A stretch of 64,000 nt of DNA from Laetmonice hystrix (Eukaryota). The first letter of the stretch is position 1; each line of letters starts with the position of its first letter. Location: contig OZ249446.1 in assembly GCA_965235115.1 (NCBI GenBank), positions 14,570,001 through 14,634,000 of the forward strand, written 5' to 3'. The translations under genes and the position numbers were made by a program. Below are positions 3,177 to 62,241 of the stretch, in pieces. The notes beneath the pieces were generated by a model. That model had not been told where the DNA came from. It made no database searches and saw nothing but the letters and a program-made list of their open reading frames with translations.

Positions 3177-6100
3177 AGAACTGAGGAGACGATAATATCT
3201 ATTTGGGATATGTTGATATTCGTGTAAAATTAACATAAGTCATATTCCGGGCCACACCTATTGATAACGAGGTTCGAAGACCCACAGAAAATGGATTGGA
3301 TCGACAAACAGAAAATGATTCTAGTTATTGCTATGACATGCAATGTCCTAACAAGGCAGGAGATCGAGGGTAATGATTCTCGGAGCTATTTCGTGGAACT
3401 GAAGTATGGCATTGGACTCAAAAAGCCAAGTGGGCCCTTAATTTTGTACCCCTGACTTCCTCATCAGGATTTATGATGAGCACTTTTTTTCTAATTATTC
3501 TCCTAAAGCTCTGATTTTCAATAATCATTATTCTGTTTTCATAGTCAACAAATTGCTCTATATAGGCCTAGTTGCCCGGAAAATTCACTGCACATATATA
3601 CATCTGATAGCCACTGTTAACAACATGGCCATTACTAATTAAACAAATTAATTTCCACTATATGTTTACATTCAGGCGGGAAACAATGACTTGTACAGTT
3701 CTGCAGGAACACCAAATAAATGTTTGAATCAATGTTCGTTGCTAAGCAACTACTGAGAGAGGTTCTAAGAGTCCGTAATGGCATGCCCGCCTGGTAACGA
3801 AGTGTGAACGGGCATGGTCTGCCAGCCTCCTGCACAAGAATTTCATATACGGCAGACATTTTCTTCGATTTGATAATTAAAGGATATGCTATCCCCCGGC
3901 TGTATTTCCGGTTGTGCTGCATTCGTATTTCCATGGGGATGCCTCTAATCAGAATTTGTGGCATCAGGGGACCGACAGATGGAAAATGCGCCTGCGCGAA
4001 GGGAGCATTGTCAAGGAAAGGGAGCGTTCATTGTGGGTTAGGCGAGAATTAGTGGCAAATTTTATAGGGCGGAGACGGTCCAGAAACTCTTAGATGTTGA
4101 ATGCACGAAACTGTTGCTTCACTCTCAGCAACGTACCCCCATAACAACTCCGTCCGTCCGTTTATATGATTCGCATTGTTTCTGGTGTTAAAACGACCGC
4201 CCAATCGACACATTTCAACAGCTGCTTCCGAGGCATATATCAAGCTGAATGGCAGGCGAGCTACTAAACGAAAATTGTGGCCGCAGAGGCGACGGGAGTG
4301 GATCATCAGGGAAAACACTCTGTTCCCATTTAATGTATGGATACAAAGGGGGATATTGGCGAATAAAGTATGCATGGCTTGGAGCTGCCCTGACAGGCCG
4401 CCCACTGTAGCGCCACTGTTGGCGGGTAGCTAAAGCCTCCAACATAAGCAACTGAAATAATGATGATATTGGCAACAATGATAATAATATTTCAAGCGTT
4501 AAGAATAACATGTATAACATGCCGCTAAGGCAGGGCGGACACTTTCATTCAGTGATGACGGCCCAATATTCACGGCTCATAAAACTGCCCCCTTTACAAA
4601 GAGAATTCAGGAATCACTTCCGTGTCTAGTTACTCCCGCTTCCTACCGTTCTAATCGTCTTATTGTCTATCTGTTTACAGAGGCGGAGTGCACGGAGTGG
4701 TGTGAAGACAGGTAACTACCCCTCCTTCTTTCAATATACTCTTTATCTTTTAAGTCCCATCATACCGTTCTTTAGAGACGGTCTGAACTAAATGGCAATT
4801 ATTTCCCTTTTCTTTACGCAAACATGTCATCAATAGTCTTGAACCGAATGGCACCGTCAGCATGTGAGTTAGAGCAAAGAGTCAGAGACAGTCGAGCAGC
4901 ATCCCTTAACCTCCGAGAAGACATCTGTAATGTTCCCCTGGCTGACATAGCACAGGCACAGGTAGAATGCCCGTATTAAGCATTGCGCGTGTCGGTTGGC
5001 CCTATCAGCAGGTGTCAGGGCCGGGGACATGACTACGTGACGAAAACCCGACTCCACAAACCCTCCAATACGAGACATACATATCTAATTCTGTGACAAT
5101 ACGCTAAACAATACGGATATAAGGATGGGAACGGACGGGTGGAGAATTCAATGTGCCTTAAAATGTGCGCGAGTCATCATGTTGGTACAGCTCAGCCGCC
5201 TGATGGACTGCACAGTTCTTGTCGTTAACTACAGCACTGACCGTTTTAAATAGACTGACCGTTGACAAACAGTGCGGTTCTTACCACCTGAAAGACCCTT
5301 AGTGTGGACTGATTGAAAAAAAACACACATGTATACACCTTGAAACGGCCCATTATTGCAAATACACTGACTATCCTAAATGTATTGACTACTCAGAGAC
5401 AGTTCTTGTCAATAGAGTTTCTTATTTCACTCTATTTCATTCAACAACATCACCCAACAAAACCGAAAGAACTATACAGGTTGCCATAGAGAGTGTAAGT
5501 ATATTTCAATGACCGGCTTTAGCTAGCAATAGGAGAAGGACATACACTTTCTATTTTGAATAGAAAGTTTCGTGAACAAGTATCCGATATCACGACTCTC
5601 CGTGCTCCACACAGGTTACCAAGGAAACAGAAAGCGTCCATTGCATCAAACGGATTATTAATGACATTATTGCCTTTTGGCGGAGCAGCACAGTCCAAAA
5701 GGTAATACCGGGGTATGATGCAGCCGAAACACAGTTTAAGCATTCTGGACCGACTAAAAACTGCTCTGGAAGTGTTCAGTACAAGTCTCTACCCCTGGGC
5801 ATTCTGCATCCCTCTCTGGCACAAAGAGCTTCAACAACGTGCATGCGTTCGTACGAAAGGGTTTAAGGTGCTCATCAAGATATCCGATTACTATCTTCAC
5901 GTACCATTAACACAACTATAGCCGTACGATGGCCACGAGAACACATCGGCTGCATCATTAATTGGAATAATACAATGCCAAAACTTTTAAGAAACCCTAG
6001 AATTCTAGAGGATCTTTAAAGCCAAGATTCACGATTGATAAAGCCAATGTGCATTTTAATACCTTTTAGAGCGCAAGTCTATGACAAAGGGTGCTGTGTA

Positions 6101-37948: not shown

Positions 37949-38270
37949 CCCCCGGGTATAAACCAGGCTAGCCCAATGTATACCCCCCCCCCGCAGCCCA
38001 GATTATACCCCCATGGTAGAATATCCACAGTTTATTTCATACAGTTTTTAAATGTTTTAATCGAAATAACTACATACCAACTTCTTGTTTTAAAATTGTA
38101 TGTGGGATTTGTATATGGGTGTCGTACGTATAAAGTGGGCTGCGGGGGGGGGGGGGGGGTTAATAGGCCTAATCTGGGCTAGCCTAGTTTGTACCCCGGG
38201 GCTAGCCCAGAATAACCCCGGGTATACTCTAGGATAGCCCAGATTATACCCGGGTATAGTCTGGTGGGGG
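37949..38270. mobile_element. Palindromic GC-rich MITE-like insert nested in the Harbinger element
   Basis: CCCGGGTATAAACCAGGCTAGCCC (37951-37974) is inverted at 38176-38200, and a C-run-GCAGCCCA is inverted at 38136-38159. Further CTAGCCCAGATTATACCCGGG-like modules follow. Confidence 0.65.
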
Positions 38271-53600: not shown

Positions 53601-53835
53601 GGTTATATATCTTAGCGTGGCGAAGCAACTGTTAAAATAATCATACATGTCCACGGGTGCTGCATAAATATCTGTTCGGTAAATTCCAGTCGTGTATTTT
53701 GTAAAAGTCCCCCCCCCCCCAATTGATAAATTTGCATTATTTTTCGCTATATTCTAACACTCTTATCTTGTAGGTCTGTATTAAGTCGCCATGGTTATTG
53801 TAAACCTAAAACCTCAACTACATGCAGTGTGTTCA

Positions 53836-54560
53836 ATATTTACCGACCTGTGGCAAAGGTACCTTGACACAATATTTACTGACCTGTGGTAAAGGTATCT
53901 TGACCCAATATTTACTGACCTGTGGTAAAGGTACCTTGACAAAATATATTGTCTGACCTGTAGTAAAGGTACCTTGACAAAATATTTACTGACCTGTGGT
54001 AAAGGTACCTTGACACAATATTTACTGATCTGTGGTAAAGGTATCTTGACCCAATATTTACTGACCTGTGGTAAAGGTACCTTGACAAAATATATTGTCT
54101 GACCTGTAGTAAAGGTACCTTGACAAAATATTTACTGACCTGTGGTAAAGGTATCTTGACACAATATTTACTGACCTGTGGTAAAGGTACCTTGACACAA
54201 TATTTACTGACCTGTGGTAAAGGTATCTTGACACAATATTTACTGACCTGTGGTAAAGGTACCTTGACACAATATTTACTGATCTGTGGTAAAGGTATCT
54301 TGACCCAATATTTACTGACCTGTGGTAAAGGTACCTTGACAAAATATATTGTCTGACCTGTAGTAAAGGTACCTTGACACAATATTTACTGACCTGTGGT
54401 AAAGGTATCTTGACACAATATTTACTGACCTGTGGTAAAGGTATCTTGACACAATATTTACTGACCTGTGGTAAAGGTACCTTGACAAAATATTTACTGA
54501 CCTGTGGTAAAGGTATCTTGACACAATATTTACTGACCTGTGGTAAAGGTACCTTTACAC
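53836..54560. repeat. 36-bp minisatellite (~20 copies) with periodic 38-bp variants
   Basis: Unit AATATTTACTGACCTGTGGTAAAGGTACCTTGACAC. The variant with ATATATTGTCTGACCTGTAG recurs at spacings of 146 bp (38+3x36) and 254 bp (38+6x36). Confidence 0.95.
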
Positions 54561-56476
54561 AAAGTCTGTCATTCGGGTACTAAGGGGCTAACGCGGGATT
54601 GATACAATGATGTGAAAAGACTCCAGTACTGAAGTAGTATACCTGAATGTGACCTTTCCTGCAGGAAACGATATTAATGTCACATATTGCAAAATGGCGT
54701 CTCATAAGTCAGCATACATGCCTGATTATCACCAGAACGATCTCTGTTGATATATCATGAAAGATGATATAAGATACTGTATACTCTCAAAGAAGAAAAA
54801 TGAACTTGTCACAATGAGAATTGCTGGTTGCTTAATGTCAGGCGGCCCTATTTACTTCCGATATTACAATATTATATGTTCTGACAGAGAAGGCTTTTAC
54901 GTCGTTACCGCCGAAAGCATTGCAATTGTGCGTACCATGATATTTAAAATTAAGACAAACGACATGCATATTCATCATAATCTTTGAGTGGCCGACTTTA
55001 CTTACTGTACTGGCGGGTCCCTCGGCGGCATAACGACCCACTCCCGTAACGGAAGACGCCGATACGTCGTCAATTACGCATCATCACGCATGTAGTCGGT
55101 CCGGCCTCAAAGTAACAGGGCTGTATAAGAGGTTGTTCTATACGTGCACGCCCCTCCGATCACCCCCCATAACGCTCGCGGGGGGGGGGGGGGGGCATTG
55201 CCAACCTGAACGCCCACGAACGAGAATGTCAGCGCATATCAATATGCCGAGCCTACAAAGCGATTTCGCCGGACTTTCCGGATCTCAAGTGCATTAACCC
55301 CCCCTAAATGGCAGTTTGGAGACAGACTTAACAGCACGACAGAGACGACAAACGACATAGTACGGTAGAGGGCCGAGTTAGCACATTTGGACCGTTGCCT
55401 TACACCACCTATAAAGCTTAACGCAATGAGTACGGACGTCAAAAGATGTGTACAATTCCTGTATAAGATATCTATAGGTCAACATTCATTCTGAAATTGC
55501 ATATTGCAATTTGCACTATAGCTGATAGCACTATAGCGTTGTAATGGGAGTCAATTTCATTTCAGGTGGTTCAGCAGTTCTAAGACGATTCGAAGTCTAT
55601 ATAATGTCAGAGGGATTCGTTGAGAACTATATTGAATACATTCCACCAAAGCCAGCCATTTCACTCAAAGTAGCCTAATTAATATCTTTAAGTAGTGGCT
55701 CGTGGATAGAGAGCCACGTTTTTTGAAAATCGATAATAAATATTTTACCTTGCTGGAGACCTGTTGCAACTTGAATGATTATTCTAGTGAAGGAAAAATA
55801 ATGTATCTTTTCATCCTGATGTTAATTTCTTTGTGAGGATACAACCGTTAACATCCTTTATAAAAGACGAGAGTCGCTGTAACAAAATGCCATCCCTTGG
55901 CTATTAGTCTGATTAAAACAACATTTACAGCAAAATTATATCAGCAAAAGTTCCCGGTCACTGTGCGTAACCCTTGTTATCTTGAACACCGACTCAGCAC
56001 CATGGCGGACATTTGGGTTAGTTCGTGATTATTTCCTATAAGCGACTTATTATTGCATGTTCCCGACTTATTCCCTTAGAGCCACGGATAATGCTCACTA
56101 CCTATACTTGGCATTATGTTAATATACCACGGAACCACGCCTATACAACCCAGGTACTTATCATTAGGTTGGCCCAAACTCACCCACGTCCCACTGTTGA
56201 CCGCACAATCCTACCTAATGTGGAGAACAGATGTACAAGCAAACAAGAGCCGAACCTTTCTTCTCAATTTGTATCAGTATGTGCCACAGAGAACATGCCC
56301 AAAACGTTTTAAAATTGTCCTGTCTACTGGGGACAGTTGTCTGCAGTGTGGTCGGATTAGACAGGTTTACACGACACCACAGGCCAATGACAGTGGATAT
56401 GATTGGCTGGCAAAACCGATACCTCCACGCAGTGTGATGTGTGGACCCTGTACAATTAAACAGTGTGTCAGTTATA

Positions 56477-56698
56477 CAGTATGTCCCAAAAAATAATGAT
56501 AGTCTGTGTTCCATTGTCAAAATGAGATACTGGTTGTGATAGGTAATGCGTGACCCTGTCAACACCAAACTTGCTGAGAGTTATCCAGGGGGATCAAACT
56601 TTATGTTCAACTTCAACTTCAAAATTCGACAATCCTCTAAAATATCTAAGTGTATTGCACACCTAAAGTTAGACTATCATTTTTTGGGGGACATACTG
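56477..56698. mobile_element. Tc1/mariner-type MITE
   Basis: TA on both flanks; ~28-bp imperfect TIRs CAGTATGTCCC...AAAAA...ATGATAGTCT. Confidence 0.82.
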
Positions 56699-57833
56699 TA
56701 CTGTATCTGGCGTTAGTTGAGGTGTGGGGTCTCACACGTCCTGACAATATACTGTGTGATGGGATAACGCGTGCAGTACTGCCGTATTGTCCACAATATG
56801 GTTCATGCCATGGTGAGTTGACTCCATAAGTATTGCAAACTTTTGTGCCGATGAAATTCCATAACCAACCCTGCATCACCACTGGCAATCTTTGACGAAC
56901 TTTTCCTACATGCTTAATATTTCGAGTAAAAAGCTGCATGAATGTTATTTTTCATTTCTTTGGTTACTTTTGACAGTACCATTTGTAAAACGAGTATCAG
57001 TAAAATGACGAGATGACTGCACACAAAATAACCAAGAGACCTTTAAGCATTTCGCTTCGTCAGGCTACAGTTGACAGCTCCCAGCACTTGACTCATCAAC
57101 GACCATCACATTAAAAGCTTTGAAATTGCCAGCACACTGGGACATGTTTGACAACTAATTAGCTAATACAATTAGTAGAAAAAGAGGAGTGTTAAGTGGA
57201 CAAAGTTAACATAACCAGATACAAAATAACCCTGAAGGAATCTGCTTCTGTCAGGATTTCCATCTTTTCTTCTGAATAAATGGTAAGTTTCCAACCATGT
57301 GGACAACCGTTCAACCGAATCACAGTGATATAATGTTACGAATGTTATACTGTATAATATACTACATACGAAAGCCAGAGCCTGACAGGCCTTATCAACA
57401 ACTTGTCTGAACTGTTCCTCTCTAATACTGATACACACACGTCTAGTATACGCTATCCATAACAATATAGCATACATAGGCCTCAGCCAAGCCCTTGCCA
57501 ATCTAATTAAAATTAGATCTTAGTTATTTCGCATGCGCTACATCGCAGCCAGCACCGACACAGCCGAGAGAGACGCGGAATACCAAGATCTAATTATACA
57601 TACCACGGGTAGCCATATGGCACCGTTTTGCAGCCAAATTATGACCACGGTTGAGCGATCAGCGAGCTGTAGCACAACGGCTAAGCGGTCAAGGAGCACC
57701 ACAGTGCACCACCGTTGACCAGGACCTTTCGGTCCTCTCGCTCAATGACGTAACCTCTCGGTTAGAAGTCATTTGTCGTCCGGCTGAACCTGGACTATGC
57801 ACGGCGACATTAGTCAGTGGTGTTTCCTCGGGT

Positions 57834-57880
57834 TGCTATCTATAAAACCCCTCGCTTCGCTCGGGGTTTTATAGATAGCA
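57834..57880. other. Perfect 18-bp-stem hairpin, loop TCGCTTCGCTC
   Basis: TGCTATCTATAAAACCCC (57834-57851) pairs with GGGGTTTTATAGATAGCA (57863-57880). Confidence 0.95.
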
Positions 57881-58190
57881 CCCCTCGGTTGTTGTTTTTT
57901 TTTCTCTCGAAAAAAATCCTCGATTTCATCTCGTGTTTTTTTTCTCGAAAATATCAGTCGATATCGTATATAAGGGCAAAATATTATTTTCAGAGAGGGT
58001 ACTGATCTGTTTACCTACAGTATAGGGGGCGCTCGTGTGATCGCCACCCATTGTACGGTAGCCCAGAAGTACAAGTATAGCTAGGCATTTTAGTGAGCGT
58101 ATCATAGTGGTTATGCTAGTTTCTTGTGCCCATGGAACAAACAGTAAAACGAGAATAAGTTAATCATTTCTTTTGCCAACTCGACACAAA

Positions 58191-59829
58191 TTAAGTTCGG
58201 CGGCCAGCCTCAACGGTAATGTTGAAGGTGCAGTGTTGATACAGATTTTGTGCTGGGGCCACTGTGGATGTGTCCGCTGAGGTCGCAGCAGCCGATGGAA
58301 CGCGTCTCGTCTCAGAAGGCCTAGGGTCAACGGAATTGAGGAGACTGCTGATGGCCATCTTCTGAGGATCGGAGGTCCTCTTATATGAGCGCACACCTAG
58401 GGAACAAACAAATAAGCATTCATTCAGTATGTTTACCCTTCCATGGTGATCATACCTTCCAGCATTTTTAGAAAGTAATTTTAGTGCAGATAGCATCGTT
58501 TGAGATTATGTCCTACCTTCTACGGACGTGTGACCTGTGCGCTCCATGATGAGCTGCTCATCCACTCCCTTTTCGTATAACCGCGTTGCGACCGTCGCTC
58601 GCCAAGAGTGATTTGTGAAGTACCCTTTCAGACCAGCCTTTTGACAAATTTCCGCAGTGTATACTTGGAAAGCTGGTTAGCCCCAACTGGTTGGCGACTG
58701 AACCACACACCTTCAGCCTTCGGGTTGCGAAGGGGTGTCAAATAGAATGCCCCATCACGACCATCAGCTGGGGAAAGAGACATGTACATTTTGAAAAGAC
58801 GTACATGGCATCTCTCTGGAGTGTGCAAGTTTGCATGGTGTATCACCTCCTTTTTTCGTATTTTGATGTGCTTAATCCCACCCTGCCTGTTTTTGGAGAC
58901 GTCCTCAACATACTTTAAATAGGCGATTTGACCCTCGGGCTCATGCAGAGTAATTTGAGGAGGGTTGAATCGCAACTGTCGATGCTCCTGCCCACCGCGC
59001 AACCCGAAGTGTTTGCCATTTAGGGACAGAATCGTTCTGAGAAGGACACGTGGGTTGCAGTCCCCTAGCTGTTTTGTTTTCCACAGCTTGTCTTCTTCCT
59101 CGACTGTTAAGACTTGGGCCTGTTTTCTATCCGAACCAATTCCTTTGCCTGAAAGGCGCTTCAATTCCGAATCCATGATCTGACGAAATCCTTCGAATAC
59201 TGTACTAGATAGTACATTGAGGTTGGTTTTTCGCTCCAGTCGGATATAGGACTGTATACCCATTACTAGGGACATTAGAGAGTTGGGTGGATATTCCGTC
59301 CTATCAATCTTGCGTGCCTCCACTACGAATTTACCCAGCCAGTAATTCAGCTGTTCATCTGTCATTAAGTCTACAGTTGTATCTATCTTTTGATACTTGT
59401 CCTGGGAAGTCGTCATGCGGTTATTGCGCGCTGTAGCCCAGATGTTGAAAGTGCGCATTGCCCACTCGTTTCGACGAAGGGTATTTTTGGGAGTGGCCAT
59501 CTTTCCACGAGCACTCAGTGCGCTGTCGGAGACTGGGTCACCAAACCGGAACCAATCAGTGTCAGCCTGAAGGGAACACGTATAAAATACAGTTTAAAAG
59601 CAGTAGATCAAACACGGCAATATAGGGAAACATGTAATGCACCGTCCCAGAAAGAATGAATAAAAGTAATAAACTGGCGTACCTGGGAATCATCATCCCC
59701 TATCCCATACATTTCTTCAACGCGTTGGGAGGCTTGGAGAAGCTCGTCATCTGAAAGAAGTTCCTGTTCTTTGGCGGCGGCTTCTATAATCTGTGAGGCA
59801 GCTACCAGCTCTTCGTCCGACAGGCTCAT
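58191..59829 (-). pseudogene. Crypton-type (DUF3504; ZMYM/KCTD1/QRICH1-related) tyrosine recombinase, 3 exons, one frameshift
   Basis: Exons 59829-59683, 59566-58517 and 58396-58191 with GT-AG introns. Motifs LNYWLGKFVVEARK...EYPPNSL, FGLRGGQEH, EDVSKNRQGG, FTNHSWRATVATRL, RTGHTSVEG|VRSYKR give the R-K-H-R-H-Y catalytic set. There is a 2-bp AC duplication at ~58657-58660; the repaired CDS is 1401 nt (466 aa). Confidence 0.9.
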
Positions 59830-60404
59830 GGTTGCAGTGTACTGGACCAAATGTCGCCGCCGTCAATTTATAGCAAACGTTGTGGAATAGACCGAGGAGT
59901 TGCAAGGAGTTGCAAGCAGTCGCAGTGTGTGTGTTGGCCTTAAGCGGTCAAGGTTGCGCCACCTTCGAGGTCCCACCACCGTCCACTACATGTAGGGTGT
60001 CCGACATGTAGACGGTATGGTTAGAAAAAAATTGAAATGTTTTGGTTACCCAGACGAACATTGCGACATTGCGACGCGTTTGCGACGGTAAAATCAAGGT
60101 CGTTAAATTAAAATATGTTGGACTTTTAGGCCCCGAGTGAAGGTTTAAAGGTTTTTCTTTAAGTCAAGTTTTTATTAGTGCACTTCTGGGCCACCGTACA
60201 GTCATAGGCAGAGCATGGACCGACAGAATCACGTAATCGCCTGATCGTCATGGTTCACTGAAAGCGGTCGACGCAGCACCACCACAAACTGGCCACCAGG
60301 ACTGACCACCACTGCCCTATATATCGTGATCTGTACATGCCATGTGGTGGTCGTGCTCACTCAACTGTGCATTTATCAGCTGGGGACCCTTGGCATGTAT
60401 GCTT

Positions 60405-60505
60405 GATAGCTACCTGGTCAGCTCAGGGCCTGGGGCGCTATATTCAGTCTCGCTTCGCTCGACTGAATATGGCGCTCCAGGCCCTTCGCTGACCAGGTAG
60501 CTATC
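60405..60505. other. 45-bp-stem hairpin, loop TCGCTTCGCTC
   Basis: 60405-60449 pairs with 60461-60505, with two G-T pairs and one 2-nt mismatch. The loop is 60450-60460. Confidence 0.95.
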
Positions 60506-62241
60506 TAGAACTTAATTAGATTGAGCCCTTGCCATCTGACAGGTGACTTGTGGACATCTCGTGAGAGCGTTTCCCGTATAGCACAATGCGTACATGTATA
60601 CTTGTAAAGGCAGTCTCTAACAGGGCTGACGGGCAGGTGCTACACATGACAGTGGATAAGTCAGCTGATGCAGGAGTCTATCACAGGGGCACACCGGCTC
60701 CGACTGGCTATGATTGATTACAAGCTGATTAACACCTTGCCAACATCTGTAGGCCAGTCCTAGCGATATCAGGCTAACCGACTGTCCGCAGTGGGTATTG
60801 GGCTTGATGAACAAATGAAACCTACAGCCGAGTTTCACTGAAATCTATCAGCAAGTTTCAACGAGACACCCAGTTAAATAAAGATTTCATTGAAATGTAC
60901 TAGGCTCAGCGTACTAGTCTCAGCTAAACCTACAGCCGAATCTAAACGAAATCTAGTTGCAGCTTCTACGAAAGCTACCATGTAGCTTCTGCGAAACGTA
61001 GTGTCGAGTCTAAAAAAACTCAAAACTAGTTTAAATGTAATATAACAGAAAATTTGGTGAACCATCTTAATGAAACCCACTTCCGGCTCGCAACATCACC
61101 CGTCGCCAAATCGGTGCTTTTACTCATTTCAATGAATGTCGAGCGATCCTTTATATATAACGAGTCGCTGCGACGTGTACTATATACAATACCAACATTT
61201 GTATACCACAGCCGTGGACCACAGGGAGTAAAAGGCAACCAGACCCTAATACTGCCCCTCCATTTGTCACTTTTCACAAATAGCAAGGGTGTACCCGCCA
61301 CCGATTCAAGTTATGTGGGCCTCAAATCCATCACCCCTAGACCACATCAACAGAATATGGATGACGCTATTTATACCACTTGTTTGATGATCAACAACTT
61401 TTTCCGAATCAATTTAACATGACCTTTACAAACTATATCTTTTATTTTTTTGCAAGGATATTTTTTATCCTAAAAGGAAAAGCCGAGCAAACCACTCCGT
61501 CGTAGACTGGTCTCTGCGGCCCTTTTCCTGCGACAGGACGGTCTGAGAATGCCAGGCAGGCAAGCTTTACAACCAGCATGGCGTTCCAACATTCCTGCCA
61601 AGTAGCTCTTTACCGGGGAGGTGCTTTCATGGTCAGAAAGAGGGCCGTGTTTCTTTAGCTATTGCTGACCGAAAGTCACCATCAATCACATCAAGTGTCA
61701 AACATGCCGGCTTTAACAGATGAGCCACACGGATTCATCATCATCGAGACCAATCCCACTCTGTGTATAGGGCCACTCGTTTTGTGCCTGTTTCCCGGCC
61801 GCCCATTGCCCATGCAGGCCATGTGAAAGACTGAAATATTTATCCCGGCATATGTTTTCAGTTGATGGAGTGGCTCGGTATTCGGTCTGATTTCCCGGGA
61901 TAAACACAATGAAAGATGTGCCATGACAGATGTAAAAACCAGGTTTCTAGGTGTCTTAAAGAGGCGGGCTTGCTCTGTAAATAAAGACTGATGGCTACAG
62001 GTCGACCTCATACTTGTGATTATACCTACTGATACTCATTTCGAGCGGTACACAGTTAAAGCAAACACCCTTGACTAACCTGTGCGCAAATCTCCCGGAA
62101 CCTATTATAGAACATATTGCCACACATATCGTCTGAACATAAAGTAACATTTTGAAAGATACAAAGGGCATGCTGGCATTATTATTTCAGGATTGACCGT
62201 CCTGTTGCATCTTTAGTTTCAGGCATGAATCTCCTCTTTAA

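Follow-up and report, generated by a model that had tools for sequence, protein, structure and literature searches.

A 64,000-nt window of Laetmonice hystrix DNA (GenBank assembly GCA_965235115.1, contig OZ249446.1, positions 14,570,001 to 14,634,000; 'the window' refers below to this whole stretch) contains a 2,916-bp element similar to the CryptonA transposons of animals, in which a tyrosine-recombinase gene lies between long hairpins marked by tandem GA/GA mismatches. Because the design of these hairpins is kept across phyla and the ends of the element are constrained, we consider the hairpins to be selected, strand-specific cis-structures. The explanation that we favour, and in which we place about as much belief as doubt, is that they are conserved cis-structures of a CryptonA-type transposon and act as the folded DNA of one strand. 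The literature searched contains no description of GA-marked hairpins, or of the asymmetric repeat, for this Crypton clade. Earlier descriptions of animal Cryptons gave them no recognizable ends, so that an account of how the recombinase finds its element was missing; the present locus supplies ends defined to the base, evidence that they are constrained more strongly than synonymous sites, and a searchable, strand-specific and conserved signature, namely long stems that carry C-GA-[mini-hairpin]-GA-G, together with a terminal repeat that is asymmetric. The mechanism becomes testable in this way, and the possibility is raised of a eukaryotic tyrosine recombinase working on folded single strands. 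A caution also follows, in that the ends may mislead, and elements classed by them as Helentron-like may have to be assigned to another class of enzyme.

Structure of the hairpins and of the gene between them

The first-pass annotation, made from the letters of the window, had drawn attention to two hairpins with an identical loop on either side of the recombinase gene. The features concerned are the following:

57830..57884, minus strand: hairpin 1 ('hairpin B'), with an 18-bp stem, GA/GA and a GC[GAA]GC tip
57900..57952, minus strand: hairpin A, with an A/T-rich stem and two GA/GA (read by hand)
58191..59830, minus strand: tyrosine-recombinase gene with three exons (Pfam DUF3504, 9e-34; QRICH1, 2e-14)
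60402..60508, minus strand: hairpin 2 (terminal hairpin), with an 18-bp outer stem, GA/GA, a 25-bp stem, GA/GA and a GC[GAA]GC tip

Hairpins 1 and 2 were recovered at the positions originally given, both by location of their arms and by folding as DNA, which gave z-scores against shuffled sequences of -7.8 / -9.1 for hairpin 1 and -14.7 / -12.7 for hairpin 2. The perfect 18-bp stem of hairpin 1 (57834-57851 / 57863-57880) extends to 57830-57884 (22-nt arms, 95%), its base comprising, on the minus strand, a purine-purine mismatch and GGG/CCC. Hairpin 2 has arms at 60405-60449 / 60461-60505 and extends to 60402-60508 (48 nt, 90%); the '45-bp stem' ascribed to it does have 45-nt arms, but their pairing is imperfect, with two G.T positions and one 2x2 internal loop, TC/TC on the plus strand, that follows the outer 18 bp. 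A scan of the whole window (loop of 3-8 nt, score of at least 11) returned three hairpins, two of which are hairpins 1 and 2, the third being an unrelated imperfect palindrome at 38207-38264 with 27-nt arms and a 4-nt loop. The 11-nt loop, TCGCTTCGCTC, is present in the same orientation in both hairpins and in no other hairpin of the window, as had been claimed; it has two exact copies in the 64 kb, counting either strand, where 0.01 would be expected, and none of 100 shuffled sequences reached two. The stems had been said to be unrelated apart from GCTATC/GATAGC, which agrees with the only stretch that they have in common, GGT[T/A]GCTATCTA[T/G]AA, found in the left arm of hairpin 1 and in the right arm of hairpin 2. 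Finally, the gene does lie between the two hairpins, but these are not equivalent brackets, hairpin 2 being terminal in the element and hairpin 1 internal.

The 11 nt do not constitute an open loop, which is where the earlier description has to be changed. On the gene-sense (minus) strand they read GA-GCGAAGC-GA, in which two G-C pairs close a GAA turn and are followed outward by a tandem G.A pair; the flanking GA...GA makes a 5'-GA/5'-GA tandem mismatch between a C-G pair and a G-C pair, and the internal loop of hairpin 2 is, on this strand, a second GA/GA. The distance from the base to the first GA/GA is 18 bp in both hairpins. The sense strand, with its GA/GA mismatches and mini-hairpin tip, therefore gives one continuous, unusual helix, and the opposite strand a helix with TC/TC bubbles. 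As judged from base pairing, each hairpin is a continuous sense-strand helix in which Watson-Crick stems are broken by GA/GA in a pyrimidine-GA-purine context. The heptamer GCGAAGC is known as a DNA mini-hairpin in which two G-C pairs are topped by a sheared G-A pair and a turn of one base, and it melts at ~76 C; members of the family to which it belongs, GCGNAGC / GCGNNAGC, are more stable as DNA than as RNA, and occur in phages and plasmids within single-strand initiation sites and hairpin promoters (PMC13037366). The tips found here either have the sequence of such mini-hairpins or are turns closed by C-G, and they are predicted to fold likewise, with the difference that they cap a stem of 18-60 bp and are always bracketed by a tandem G.A pair.

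Hairpin A, which adjoins hairpin 1, is the third GA-marked hairpin of the element and reads TTTTC-GA-GAAAAAAAACAC-GA-G...C-GA-GGATTTTTTTC-GA-GAGAAAA on the minus strand. It has counterparts in two related loci, L001 (7080-7131) and L008 (4905-4953), each with two GA/GA and each placed just before hairpin B. Nearest-neighbour folding did not recover hairpin A, and neither it nor the left-end palindrome at 57508-57598 was an outlier in that analysis.

Three other ways of accounting for the pair of hairpins were considered and abandoned. Birth of the stems by fold-back priming is ruled out, since templated synthesis would yield GA/TC and not GA/GA. A reading of the hairpins as two recombination sites in direct repeat, having their spacer in common, was rejected because only C...G is shared beside the spacer. 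An imperfect CCTCGG(G)TTG repeat is present on both sides of hairpin 1; the idea that this hairpin is a small insertion which duplicated that sequence was dropped because the position of the hairpin is conserved in relatives.

The recombinase gene is the sole open reading frame (ORF) of at least 170 aa in the element; the other ORFs are short and unremarkable, and no reverse transcriptase or other transposase was found among the ORFs of the element. Comparison by tblastn with related proteins, carried out exon by exon, aligned the R, HxxR, H and Y positions (LRGGQEH, NHSWRAT, TGH and RSY), so that the R-H-R-Y residues of a Crypton tyrosine recombinase are present; the recombinases of the relatives also match PF00589. 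The window copy has a 2-bp (TA) insertion at 58660-58661 which shifts the frame, and most other copies are without it.

Conservation of the hairpin design in related elements

The loci encoding the closest proteins were examined together with 37 more, obtained from a metagenome scan with a 7-sequence protein alignment. The organisms represented include Lingula (a brachiopod), Haliotis (a mollusc) and a moray eel, besides metagenome contigs. The closest recombinases are 57-59% identical to that of the window, and the loci having hairpins of the same design span 36-59% identity. Such hairpins were found upstream of the gene in L001 (Lingula), L002/L003, L005 (Haliotis rubra), L006, L008, L020, L021 and L024/L026, and downstream of it in L001, L004, L008, L028 and L045 (the moray eel Gymnothorax javanicus); at most loci a hairpin is seen in only one of the two positions, either on account of short contigs or because a search for the other gave none. 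The first-pass annotation had proposed a search for its hairpins near Crypton recombinase genes and for compensatory changes in their stems, and both are borne out, with hairpins of the same design present at related genes in other phyla and stems that differ from one copy to another and yet stay paired. The outcome that it had named as adverse, an abundant independent micro-element unlinked to recombinase elements, was not seen.

What is kept in these hairpins, as had been suspected, is structure rather than stem sequence. In the 13 hairpins that could be anchored by their tips, the arms pair at 93% with their own partner and at 33% with the partners of other hairpins; the left arms are 32% identical to one another, and three to four pair types occur at every stem position. 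The C-GA...GA-G arrangement, on the other hand, is invariant (13/13), the pair beside GA always being C-G. The downstream hairpin of L008 has an identical tip, GAGCGAAGCGA, and the tips of other relatives are GAGCGCAGCGA, GAGCGTCAGCGA, GAGGC-GAA/GCA-GCCGA and similar. They are either exactly GCGAAGC, GCGCAGC or GCGTCAGC, or GAA, GCA or GTCA turns closed by C-G; a G..A turn is found in 12/13 tips, L004 having ACT, and an exact GCGNAGC or GCGNNAGC tip is present in the window element, L001, L002, L006 and L008. Over 252 kb of the relatives' loci, some of which duplicate one another, 41 hairpins contain 33 2x2 mismatches, 21 of them GA/GA on the sense strand and only one TC/TC. It is therefore the folded shape on one strand that, from these comparisons, selection appears to preserve.

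Some sequence is also shared outside the tips. Four elements, those of the window, L001, L002 and L008, have the motif CATACAT[A/G]C after their upstream hairpin. In addition, GATAGC/GCTATC (TAGATAGC on the sense strand, in both window hairpins) was noticed at or in the stems of four annelid and Lingula hairpins (window 57830-57884 and 60402-60508; L001:7150-7185 and 4595-4630), and it may represent a sequence-specific contact inside otherwise free stems. The hairpin upstream of the gene in L006, whose recombinase is 43% identical, measures 143 nt and has three GA/GA; the palindrome there, also counted with three GA/GA, covers 184 nt (L006:4808-4991) and stops 10 nt short of the called start codon. 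Copies of CATACTCTA were observed on both sides of this palindrome, as if two element ends were joined.

Boundaries of the element and its host

The limits of the element were derived from copies and junctions in contigs of three public runs of one sample, in which contig depth is a rough guide to copy number, and from comparison with relatives. They show the element to be nested in a miniature inverted-repeat transposable element (MITE):

57596..60511, minus strand: Crypton-type (CryptonA-like) tyrosine-recombinase element, 2,916 bp (from MITE contigs and the limit of similarity to relatives)
57596..57610, plus strand: 15-nt asymmetric inverted repeat, terminal copy (ATACATACCACGGGT), the 3' end of the element in gene sense
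60386..60400, plus strand: 15-nt asymmetric inverted repeat, subterminal copy (ACCCTTGGCATGTAT), directly inside hairpin 2
57499..57595, plus strand: host MITE, left 97 of 109 bp (loose ends in 35-38 contigs at 57499)
60512..60523, plus strand: host MITE, right 12 bp (TTAATTAGATTG; other copies run from 57595 into TTAATTAGATTG)
57490..57498, no strand: target-site duplication of the host MITE, left copy, 9 bp AGCCCTTGC (direct repeat with 60524-60532)
60524..60532, no strand: target-site duplication, right copy, 9 bp (direct repeat and empty-site allele)

Dozens of other copies pass from 57595 directly into TTAATTAGATTG, and 57499-57595 rejoined to 60512-60523 makes a MITE of 109 bp whose terminal inverted repeats match perfectly over 23 bp. 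Because the rejoined flanks form an intact MITE, the recombinase element is the 2,916-bp insert 57596-60511. The 20-bp inverted repeats and 9-bp direct repeat at 57490-57518 / 60503-60532, which could have been taken for the ends of the Crypton, belong to the MITE, since excision of 57596-60511 restores the perfect 23-bp repeats; this ownership also argues against reading the joined ends as a lox/FRT-like site. The host is a MITE by every usual sign, being short, non-coding and highly repeated, with inverted repeats, a 9-bp duplication and an empty site. Its summed contig depth is ~2,000x that of the flanks, and the empty-site allele, in which 57489 is joined to 60524 with 9 ambiguous letters, has single-copy depth in 3/3 runs. 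The MITE and the nested Crypton are missing together in that allele, and the composite probably moved as one unit.

The recombinase element itself sits between AATT and TTAA of the right inverted repeat of the MITE, with neither duplication nor microhomology. Similarity to Lingula L001 and to L008 stops exactly at ...GGTATGTAT, which corresponds to window position 57596; GGTATGTAT is invariant in the three elements and the sequence beyond it is unrelated. On the plus strand the element starts with ATACATACCACGGGT and ends with ACCCTTGGCATGTAT-G-[hairpin 2]-AAC, the two copies of the 15-nt repeat (57596-57610 and 60400-60386) being inverted and matching at 13/15 positions. Between hairpin 2 and the end of the element there are 3 nt, and on its inner side the hairpin adjoins the repeat whose inverted copy constitutes the opposite terminus. 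Hairpin 1 lies ~235 nt inside that opposite terminus, hairpins 1 and A together being placed ~235-350 nt inside it. When the two ends are joined, folding extends hairpin 2 by the terminal repeats into one hairpin of ~150 nt. The 5' end of the Lingula and L006 elements could not be located to the base.

Summed contig depth suggests that the copy number of the non-coding ends is many times that of the gene, and deletion derivatives are visible as joints. The element shares with the CryptonA elements of animals a single intron-bearing tyrosine-recombinase gene with a DUF3504/QRICH1-type domain, the lack of reverse transcriptase, target duplication and classical terminal repeats, and an excess of non-autonomous derivatives over coding copies (PMC3212892). 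It differs from them by its base-exact ends, by its long GA-marked hairpins found across phyla and by the asymmetric 15-nt inverted repeat, which is present even though terminal inverted repeats proper and a target duplication are both missing, as expected of a Crypton. Kojima & Jurka 2011 described animal Cryptons as being without terminal repeats and did not mention hairpins (PMC3212892), nor are hairpins mentioned in the 2026 Glomhopper paper.

Selective constraint on the non-coding ends

Two of the relatives, L005:4785-7315 (Haliotis rubra) and L045:3796-6583 (Gymnothorax javanicus), have ~83% DNA identity over >1.2 kb within unrelated flanks, which allowed the element ends to be read from a cross-phylum alignment. 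The 5' end is GTATAC followed by an extended GA-marked hairpin and then by TTACACCAC..., and the 3' end is ...GTGGTGTAA; the layout is that of the window element and there is no target duplication. For the recombinase ORF, dN/dS is 0.10 with dS 0.68 and pS 0.447, i.e. 45% of synonymous sites have changed, whereas the non-coding terminal 165-190 nt of each end are 90% identical, to be compared with 55% at synonymous sites. Since 10% of positions differ in the ends against 45% of silent sites, the ends are under the stronger constraint and, in this alignment of two elements, evolve several times slower than synonymous sites. The pair is a candidate for horizontal transfer between phyla, unless one of the assemblies is contaminated.

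Possible function of the hairpins

We propose that one strand of the element, when single-stranded or extruded, would fold into the hairpins, and that the element's recombinase or a host factor would read the fold by its shape during excision, end-joining or integration. Strand identity would be marked by the GA/GA mismatches, which would also keep the duplex from being a perfect palindrome. The first-pass annotation had put forward excision, replication of a circular intermediate and recombinase binding as putative roles. In the joined form, the terminal repeats and hairpin 2 would make up the hairpin of ~150 nt, with a predicted junction AAC|ATACATACC. That the hairpins most likely act as folded DNA is suggested by four features: the G..A turn is typical of DNA; the terminal position of hairpin 2 leaves no space for an internal promoter upstream; asymmetric terminal repeats are otherwise known from single-strand (rolling-circle) transposons (PMC3627910, PMC4067079); and the mismatches also keep the duplex palindrome imperfect.

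Two prokaryotic systems offer models for such a function. The attC sites of integrons are imperfect palindromes of variable sequence that keep their fold and unpaired features, and of which one strand is active with the tyrosine recombinase IntI. The variable stem, fixed mismatches and one-strand bias seen here resemble them by analogy; attC sites are bacterial, however, their strand marks are extrahelical bases and not tandem G.A, and binding of the present hairpins by the recombinase would be a prediction from the analogy. Elements of the IS200/IS605 group have strand-specific imperfect hairpins near both ends, produce no target duplication and form a circular single-strand junction. Here too the likeness, which lies in the imperfect strand-specific hairpins near the ends and the missing target duplication, is one of analogy, whereas the transposase of that group is of the HUH Y1 type, its hairpins are short and its hosts are bacterial or archaeal. 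If the analogy were extended to a widespread clade of animal Crypton elements, these transposons would move via a folded single strand, shape would be what their recombinase reads in the GA-marked hairpins and in the paired terminal repeats, and small non-coding elements with such ends now filed as Helitron2/Helentron-like would be mobilized by Crypton recombinases; so broad a generalization we consider quite unlikely.

Several observations weigh against the action of the hairpins as folded single-stranded DNA. The single-stranded or circular forms which it invokes are predicted from sequence. Wobble bias among single stem mismatches, used as a DNA versus RNA test, gave no clear signal, and two transitions in hairpin 2 favour the plus strand. 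In L006 only 10-30 nt lie between the palindrome and the ATG called for the gene, so that the palindrome could be transcribed. No such hairpins were found in a more distant recombinase family (WLWD, ~40% identity, ~20 loci, ~150 kb), and the eel copy L045 is without the 13-nt tip (the GA-GCC-GTCA-GGC-GA region) of its upstream hairpin while keeping the stems (L045:~3860; columns 102-114 of the L005/L045 alignment). At the locus itself, the latest mobility event was probably that of the MITE composite and not of the recombinase element, and the MITE, which is very abundant, is mobile although it has no GA-marked hairpin.

One alternative is that the hairpins operate at the RNA level, by folding in the untranslated regions of the sense transcript and affecting stability, export or translation, or by giving rise to small RNAs. 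All the marks are on the gene-sense strand, in keeping with this, and in L006 and L005 the upstream palindrome is only 10-140 nt before the start codon. Tandem G.A in the context 5'-C-GA-G-3' is also a stable RNA motif. The likeness of the hairpins to miRNA precursor models is weak and sub-threshold, an Rfam search having returned no family at threshold and only matches far below the gathering scores. What makes the RNA explanation unlikely in our opinion is that only 3 nt separate hairpin 2 from the end of the element, so that an upstream promoter would be outside the element, that the C-G-closed three-base G..A turn is notably a DNA motif, less stable in RNA, and that a location beside terminal repeats is typical of transposition signals.

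A second alternative, which we find improbable, is that the element is a non-autonomous transposon of the Helitron2/Helentron type, mobilized in trans by a Rep-helicase, with hairpin 2 as its 3' terminator and the recombinase as cargo. The resemblance to Helitron2, Helentron and HINE elements is real (PMC3627910, PMC4067079): on the plus strand, a repeat of the expected size (12-15 bp; here 15 nt, matching at 13/15) stands at the extreme 5' end and its inverted copy precedes a 3'-terminal palindrome, the window copy was inserted between T's without modification of the target (AATT^TTAA), and non-autonomous copies outnumber coding ones. At L001, L005, L008 and L045 the element is not bordered by T|T. 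The palindrome is far longer, its stem of 45-60 bp, with regular GA/GA, contrasting with the published 5-10 bp. Moreover, the element encodes a tyrosine recombinase and not a Rep-helicase; no Rep or helicase ORF was found in it or among the genes called at the relatives' loci, where the called neighbour genes have no Pfam match, and each compact element of 2.5-3 kb with both ends read holds the recombinase only. That gene is under the strong purifying selection calculated above for L005/L045, and the unit of gene plus ends recurs across phyla, which is unexpected of cargo in a non-autonomous element.

A loop shared by chance, or the fortuitous arrival near the gene of copies of an independent palindromic micro-element, could be defended on the grounds that one copy has 27 other letters in place of hairpin 1 (joint 57825 to 57896) and that the CCTCGG(G)TTG repeat flanks this hairpin, but such an origin is largely refuted and seems to us very remote, given the frequency of the exact 11-mer, the same design at matching positions in other phyla, ends more conserved than synonymous sites, and the lack of any such hairpin elsewhere in the window or in the ~150 kb of distant-family loci.

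Other repeats in the region

Inside the element, a 22-bp inverted repeat with 2 mismatches (58052-58073 and 60179-60200) brackets the gene, and a direct repeat, TAAGCGGTCAAGG, occurs at 57682 and 59941. Just to the left of the locus, positions 56401-56800 correspond to a very highly repeated short element with a summed contig depth of ~60,000-69,000 and an internal inverted repeat (56475-56505 / 56671-56700). Further left, at 53834-54562, there is a minisatellite of ~20 copies of a 36-bp unit, with a higher-order period of 146 bp and 91-94% matching.

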